DNA of 63,984 nt, counting the filler, from Guillardia theta CCMP2712 (lineage: Eukaryota > Protista > Cryptophyta): NCBI RefSeq assembly GCF_000315625.1. It is 3 parts of 3 records of this genome, joined end to end, with 100 filler letters (N's around TTAATTAATTAA, not from the genome) between each part and the next. Parts side by side here need not be neighbours in the genome. Positions count along the whole stretch, not along the records: positions 31,683 to 62,802 come from NW_005434555.1; 2 more parts are not named here. The stretch is one strand, 5' to 3'. The position numbers and the translations under genes were made by a program. Positions 39,438 to 39,668 of this stretch are shown in pieces (position 1 is the stretch's first letter; each line of letters starts with the position of its first letter). The notes under the pieces are model-generated. The model was not told the origin of the DNA. It ran no database searches and worked only from the letters and a program-made list of their open reading frames with translations.

Positions 39438-39668
39438 ATGTGCAAGGCACTCCACGAGTCAGCACTTGTTGCCAGCAGAAAGATCATGATCCAAAACGTC
39501 GACTTCTACATCCCACGCTCCAGCCGCGACAAGCTGCAGCGGCCTGCCGACAGCGCCTCCTCCTCGGCCAAAGCCTCTCAGCATCGCGAGGCAGGAGCGG
39601 CGTCAAAGCCGAGCCTCTTGACCAACGTGCTGCATGTGCAGAGGAGGCTGAGGGTCGAGGCTGACTGA
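39438..39668 (+). CDS. Hypothetical 76-aa intronless microprotein (MCKAL family)
   Basis: aacATG start, C-ending codon bias, and motifs shared with the ORFs at 52.6-54.6 kb. Confidence 0.55.
   Translation: MCKALHESALVASRKIMIQNVDFYIPRSSRDKLQRPADSASSSAKASQHREAGAASKPSLLTNVLHVQRRLRVEAD

Follow-up and report, generated by a model that had tools for sequence, protein, structure and literature searches.

A 76-codon open reading frame (ORF) in the genome of the cryptophyte Guillardia theta CCMP2712 (RefSeq assembly GCF_000315625.1) raises two questions: whether it belongs to a family of microproteins that start with Met-Cys, and what such a start would mean for the function of the family. The ORF, called MCKAL here after its first five residues, lies in a window of 63,984 nucleotides (the whole stretch of DNA that was analysed, filler included, in which parts of three records are joined), within the piece that comes from NW_005434555.1 (positions 31,683 to 62,802). 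The original prediction took MCKAL for the distant fourth member of an unannotated family, of which three other members, beginning MCRSL, lie about 13 kb away. The ORF and its leader are located as follows.

39438..39668, plus strand: MCKAL ORF, ATG start, 76 codons plus TGA, 76 aa
39279..39437, plus strand: C/T-rich leader of MCKAL, frame open throughout

The ATG-initiated ORF found at this position encodes exactly the peptide quoted in the original prediction, with the N terminus MCKALHES. We scored codon usage as a log-likelihood, with the four clear exons of the piece as the training set. The ORF frame of MCKAL scored +0.216 bits per codon, with a GC3 of 0.78, and all five remaining frames of the region scored below it. 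For comparison, the exon controls scored +0.25, +0.38, -0.06 and -0.25, 82 control ORFs had a mean of -0.21 (SD 0.24), and MCRSL copies A and C scored +0.11 and +0.125. The ORF frame of MCKAL is the only one with coding-like codon usage. A start at the upstream ATG at 39279, which is in frame, would yield a 129-aa product; the codon score of the stretch between this ATG and the MCKAL start is -0.04, and the contig from the DNA run X2 carries an A>C change at 39279 and indels at 39269-39275. As predicted, the members follow C-rich leaders: C makes up 58% of the 60 nt 5' of the ATG in MCKAL and 57%, 60% and 50% in MCRSL copies A, B and C, as against 22% and 15% upstream of the starts of the two flanking genes. 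This leader is only weak corroboration, because about 12% of all 60-nt stretches of the piece reach 85% or more pyrimidine or purine.

The three MCRSL copies lie 13.5-15 kb from MCKAL.

52649..52942, minus strand: MCRSL copy A, intact 97-aa ORF; repeat unit 52587-53044
53538..53876, plus strand: MCRSL copy B, head-to-head with A, frameshifted; repeat unit 53436-53895
54312..54593, minus strand: MCRSL copy C, tail-to-tail with B, intact 93-aa ORF; repeat unit 54243-54687

Their DNA is 93-99% identical, and they are recent DNA duplicates. The unit common to all three is about 365 nt long; it starts 4 nt ahead of the ATG and ends at TGTACAATAA(A/T). In copy B, two 1-nt deletions destroy the frame after about codon 48, so that the ATG-initiated frame is without the SDMLLxSVL and RRHS blocks. 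The three codon positions share the substitutions among the copies evenly, with no third-position bias, and copies A and C differ by roughly four synonymous and seven non-synonymous changes; because of this even spread, the local copies alone are no evidence of purifying selection. The 3' halves of the units are nearly identical, which suggests gene conversion. The array as a whole (52587-54687) is palindromic, A(-)/B(+)/C(-), with inverted-repeat arms of 255 nt at 93% identity and of 119-120 nt at 98-99%, and read-through transcription across it would produce long hairpins. An apparent fifth copy at 50452-50901 on the plus strand, returned by an nhmmer search with the MCRSL unit (E 1e-14), was rejected: the resemblance is compositional only and the coding core is unaligned, the region consisting of a C/T-rich tract followed by (ATG)n and (GAG)n repeats. 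This region shows that the pattern of C/T-rich followed by G/A-rich sequence is repeated in the piece with no coding core.

Evidence that the family exists came from outside the locus. A profile built from MCKAL and MCRSL copies A and C, searched exhaustively with HMMER against 1.84 billion representative proteins, returned exactly one match, P0001 (94 aa, E 3.4e-16). P0001 is an ORF of a marine transcriptome in the MMETSP collection (Transcript_1655/g.3513, 'type:complete') and starts with MCKA; the search of MMETSP-type data that the original prediction had proposed as a check thus added one further member. Along its whole length, P0001 is 51% identical to MCRSL copy A (E 5e-28); the two have the same block order and equal length. 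The conserved blocks are MC(K/R)(A/S)(I/L)SxSSA, (I/V)QIxDExFYLP, PSxF, SDMLLxSVLxxREKA and RRHSxPxG, separated by a variable middle rich in Pro, Ser and Ala. The Met-Cys-(Lys/Arg) start is invariant in all five sequences (MCKAL, MCRSL A-C and P0001). Because an intact homologue of the same length, 51% identical, occurs in a transcriptome outside the locus, the MCRSL family is real, is expressed somewhere and retains its Met-Cys-(Lys/Arg) start. The MCRSL coding sequence is probably intronless, because the genomic ORF is colinear with the transcript ORF of P0001.

The other searches point to a narrow distribution. Word-index searches with MCKAL and with MCRSL copy A returned no relatives, and the same search with an alignment as query returned P0001 alone; an exact look-up of all the ORFs in the protein collection found none of them. 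Pfam held no family for MCKAL even at E<=1, and none for the MCRSL peptides or P0001, and neither a PDB profile search nor two metagenome scans returned a relative of the family. Scans against Rfam and for tRNAs gave no matches. The ESM Atlas gave no usable matches, and its recognition score does not discriminate here, because the bona fide P0001 (1313) scores below MCKAL, which is itself low (1618). AlphaFold2 models had a pLDDT of 56.8 and a pTM of 0.12 with the alignment led by P0001, and a pLDDT of 61.5 and a pTM of 0.23 with that led by MCKAL, in which only a C-terminal helix was formed; the family is accordingly predicted to be intrinsically disordered. As predicted, there is an unannotated family of microproteins that start with Met-Cys-(Lys/Arg). 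Its age is another matter: a single relative among 1.84 billion proteins does not show the family to be 'old', as had been claimed. That this one relative is an MMETSP transcript suggests a lineage of marine microbial eukaryotes. The evidence supports calling the MCRSL type a new microprotein family, disordered and of narrow distribution; for MCKAL, membership is probable. In being short, intronless, disordered, unannotated and narrowly distributed, these genes resemble lineage-specific orphan small ORFs and microproteins; most of those have no homologue across datasets, whereas the MCRSL branch has one with conserved motif blocks.

Whether MCKAL belongs to this family is a harder question. 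All three motifs of the original prediction are present in MCKAL, in the same order as in MCRSL. The first block stands at the very N terminus and reads MCKAL, against MCKAI in P0001 and MCRSL in the MCRSL copies. The second, (I/V)xIxxxxFY(L/I)P, lies 10-15 residues after the start, behind a 3-residue insertion, and reads IMIQNVDFYIP, against IQIKDERFYLP and IQIHDEHFYLP. The counterpart of SDMLLxSVLxxREKA is PSLLTNVLHVQRR, which reaches p~0.05 in a conditional test of colinearity and is not above chance alone; on its own, the third motif (KPS..LL..VL) ranks 52nd of 242. The PSxF block is absent from MCKAL, and the RRHSxPxG tail is absent both from MCKAL, which ends at residue 76 where the family has 93-97 aa, and from all frames downstream. 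P0001 has both of these blocks; MCKAL matches it over only about 28 N-terminal residues and is 18 residues shorter. As the original prediction had noted, there is no obvious similarity in DNA: an nhmmer profile of the MCRSL unit gave no match at the MCKAL locus.

We searched the 631 six-frame segments of the piece with a profile built from P0001 and MCRSL copies A and C, from which MCKAL had been left out. MCKAL was the top non-self match (E 0.0042, 12.9 bits; next best E 0.095), and the alignment began at profile position 1 on Met1 of MCKAL. The reversed piece gave a maximum of 6.8 bits, and 1.5 Mb of Markov-3 sequence contained one match of at least 12.9 bits, equivalent to about 0.02 per piece; a score of 12.9 bits would not reach significance genome-wide. 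When the N termini alone were compared, the first 27 residues of MCKAL scored 42 against the MCRSL N terminus, and the runner-up among the 242 ATG-ORF variants in the piece scored 32. In 3 Mb of third-order Markov sequence, one of 24,632 ORFs reached 42; a Gumbel fit to natural ORFs was less favourable, with 0.23 expected. Overall, the chance probability of the match within the piece is of the order of 0.002-0.02. MCKAL is thus probably, though not certainly, the distant family member that was predicted; the clear match is limited to its N-terminal 27-28 residues, the third motif is marginal and the tail is missing.

On this basis we favour the reading that MCKAL is a genuine, strongly diverged paralogue in a real, lineage-restricted family of disordered microproteins of about 95 aa, and give it a probability of roughly 0.6. 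Its representatives are the MCRSL triplet at this locus and a single MMETSP transcript elsewhere. The family consists of short conserved blocks, Met-Cys-(Lys/Arg)-(Ala/Ser)-(Leu/Ile), (I/V)xIxxxxFY(L/I)P, SDMLLxSVLxxREKA and RRHSxPxG, between which lies a variable Pro/Ser/Ala-rich linker. MCKAL would have retained the N-terminal module and a faint LLxxVL block and lost the tail; its shared ancestry with MCRSL and its translation are both inferred. Homology itself is rather probable, and it is the better bet because MCKAL lies 13.5 kb from the MCRSL cluster.

The competing explanation that survives best is coincidence: MCKAL would be a random ORF in a divergent intergenic region of 2 kb, its N terminus resembling the family by accident in a context rich in C and in C-ending codons. 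We consider this unlikely, although it has a good deal to draw on. Compositionally adjusted BLASTP of MCKAL against MCRSL gives just 16.9 bits (E 0.026 for one comparison), and tblastn of MCKAL against the piece ranks MCRSL first at only E 0.048, with noise at 20.8 bits. The failure of the third motif to exceed chance alone fits this explanation as well, as does the resemblance of the MCKAL and MCRSL 3' flanks, which is no greater than background. The conserved residues use the C-ending codons preferred by the genome, which makes a coincidence at the DNA level easier, and MCKAL itself has no relative or orthologue in the databases searched (word-index, HMMER and metagenomes). N termini of this kind do arise at random: a 125-aa ORF beginning MCLALSP (61798-62175, plus strand) is the second-best N-terminal look-alike in the piece, and we rejected it as a chance match since its codons are non-preferred and it shows no other motif. 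This ORF lies directly 3' of a long C/T-rich tract.

Coincidence is harder to reconcile with the behaviour of P0001, which was found independently and is closer to MCKAL than MCRSL is. BLASTP of MCKAL against P0001 gives 24.6 bits (E 4e-5), and the two share MCKA(L/I), IxIxxxxFY(I/L)PRS and LLxxVLxV. The independent profile, with its E value of 0.004 and empirical rate of about 0.02 per piece, also argues against chance, as do the start of the match precisely at the MCKAL start codon, the coding-like codon usage confined to that frame and the position of MCKAL no more than 13.5 kb from the family cluster.

Transcription bears on the same choice. MCKAL lies midway in the intergenic region, with an EsV-1-7 gene on its left and a PWP2/UTP-like gene on its right.

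37556..38503, minus strand: gene for an EsV-1-7 cysteine-rich repeat protein (Pfam PF19114, E 1e-44)
about 39340..39875, strand not assigned: weakly transcribed island over the MCKAL ORF, from RNA-like runs X7 and X1
40582..44782, plus strand: WD40 plus Utp12 gene (PWP2/UTP-like, small-subunit processome), from Pfam

The EsV-1-7 gene, which is divergent from the MCKAL side, has an intact ORF of 315 aa that contains five EsV-1-7 cysteine-rich repeats, and RNA-like contigs cover it. The EsV-1-7 family is expanded in, and has been described mainly from, brown algae and their relatives, which bears on the origin of the piece; none of the papers searched ties the domain to Guillardia. The PWP2-like gene has its start codon near 40582, about 0.9 kb downstream of MCKAL, and at least one intron; RNA-like contigs on it begin at about 40474-40520. 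Its first exon frame continues at 42060-42250 (plus strand) into a Val/Met-rich, homopolymer-like stretch of GTG/ATG repeats, which is most likely an intron start with a microsatellite. A second WD40-repeat gene lies at 57000-59620 on the plus strand, where the ORF at 58764-59615 matches WD40 (E 7e-19); no ORFs of the piece have higher coding scores than those next to it at 57148-58166.

Coverage by the DNA run X2 is even across the entire intergenic region. In the RNA-like runs X7 and X1, the two flanking genes and the island over MCKAL are covered, and coverage is zero on either side of the island, at 38804-39205 and 39876-40411. Depth on the island is low: 1-11 in X7, against 262-387 on the neighbours, and 2 in X1 (contig at 39503-39770), against 4-13. 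The X1 island contig differs from the window by five mismatches and one inserted A (behind 39723), whereas those of X1 on the flanking genes match the window at every base; these differences could reflect a paralogous copy, a contig-end artefact or an error. The raw RNA run X6 contributed a handful of island reads (binned depth 0.2-1.6), all with first mates on the plus strand, and none of its reads was placed on either flanking gene. No splice junction in the reads joins the island to either neighbour. A small independent transcript covers MCKAL, and it is compatible with either strand. If the X6 library is dUTP-stranded, its reads would indicate RNA from the minus strand, which would suit the coincidence explanation, under which the weak signal would stem from non-coding transcription, either antisense or associated with a promoter. 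We rejected the idea that MCKAL is a uORF or a 5' exon belonging to the PWP2-like gene, there being neither RNA coverage nor a junction across 39876-40411. To the left of the island, a trinucleotide repeat at 38640-38800 (poly-Leu on the plus strand, (RSR)n on the minus strand) reaches an RNA depth of about 55,000 in X7, with reads and contigs running on into other sequence; this depth comes from other loci that carry the same repeat.

Less likely again is that MCKAL descends from an old MCRSL-type duplicate that has lost its C-terminal blocks and is now a decaying relic, no longer under selection as a protein. The missing RRHSxPxG tail and PSxF block, the faintness of the LLxxVL block and an expression very low relative to the neighbours in X7 would all be expected of a relic, and copy B illustrates that the family tolerates pseudogenisation. 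Yet the ORF is intact and its codon usage matches that of bona fide exons; moreover, N-terminal similarity has been retained in the protein where none is left in the DNA, which suggests constraint at the protein level.

Most likely, the proteins would act through short linear motifs, with the conserved N-terminal module as the functional core. Removal of Met would leave Cys as residue 1, which could control either stability, as a Cys/Arg N-degron, or membrane attachment, through S-acylation. A Met-Cys start is uncommon and gives entry to the oxygen-sensing Cys/Arg N-degron pathway: Met aminopeptidase removes a Met that precedes Cys, after which PCO or ADO can oxidise the N-terminal Cys, ATE1 can arginylate it and UBR/PRT6 can recognise it. 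MCKAL has its Cys at position 2, where Met aminopeptidase could expose it.

The original prediction went further and described short-lived, possibly oxygen- or redox-sensitive regulatory peptides, a description that is conjectural. We regard it as improbable that the level of the protein would report oxygen or redox state, although several features fit. Cys2 and a basic residue 3 are kept in five of five sequences, across 51% identity and in MCKAL; Cys2 is the sole cysteine in MCKAL and in MCRSL copies A and C; and the N terminus is predicted to be disordered, so that it would be accessible. Mammalian R4 RGS proteins (RGS4, RGS5 and RGS16) and other ADO/ATE1 substrates have a Met-Cys-(Lys/Arg)-x-Leu N terminus like that of this family, the N termini of RGS4, RGS5 and RGS16 being of the MC(K/R)xL type. 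The family has neither an RGS domain nor any other Pfam domain, so the likeness does not imply homology. Plant ERF-VII proteins, which are PCO substrates, likewise have a Met-Cys start on a disordered N terminus, but they have the consensus MCGGAI(I/L) and an AP2 domain; that consensus is absent here, MCKAL reading MCKALHES with no Pfam match, and the family proteins are merely 76-97 aa long. In a proteome-wide human screen, basic or hydrophobic residues were favoured right after the Cys and MC- starts were under-represented (PMC12377780), and the basic residue 3 of the family corresponds to the context that ADO and ATE1 prefer (PMC12377780). The proposal is reasonable as an analogy, and it would require the enzymes of the pathway in this organism. 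S-acylation or N-acetylation of Cys2 would fit the sequences equally well. That the conserved Met-Cys-(Lys/Arg) is a working Cys/Arg N-degron, which would make the family oxygen- or NO-sensitive, short-lived regulators, is therefore very doubtful; equally so, and only together with that reading, is the suggestion that MCKAL is a diverged member that keeps just the degron module.

What began as a motif match made by eye has become a small gene family that can be tested, one whose MCRSL type has an expressed, 51%-identical relative with a Met-Cys-basic start and no counterpart in Pfam, the PDB or the other databases. Were its members N-degron substrates, they would offer an easy way into oxygen or redox sensing for an algal lineage with none described, and N-terminal cysteine sensors would then include a class from neither plants nor animals. 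Otherwise, this is another lineage-restricted, disordered orphan family, relevant to annotation and biologically ordinary. The RRHS block of the MCRSL branch, which is missing in MCKAL, may also be read as a site for a basophilic kinase.
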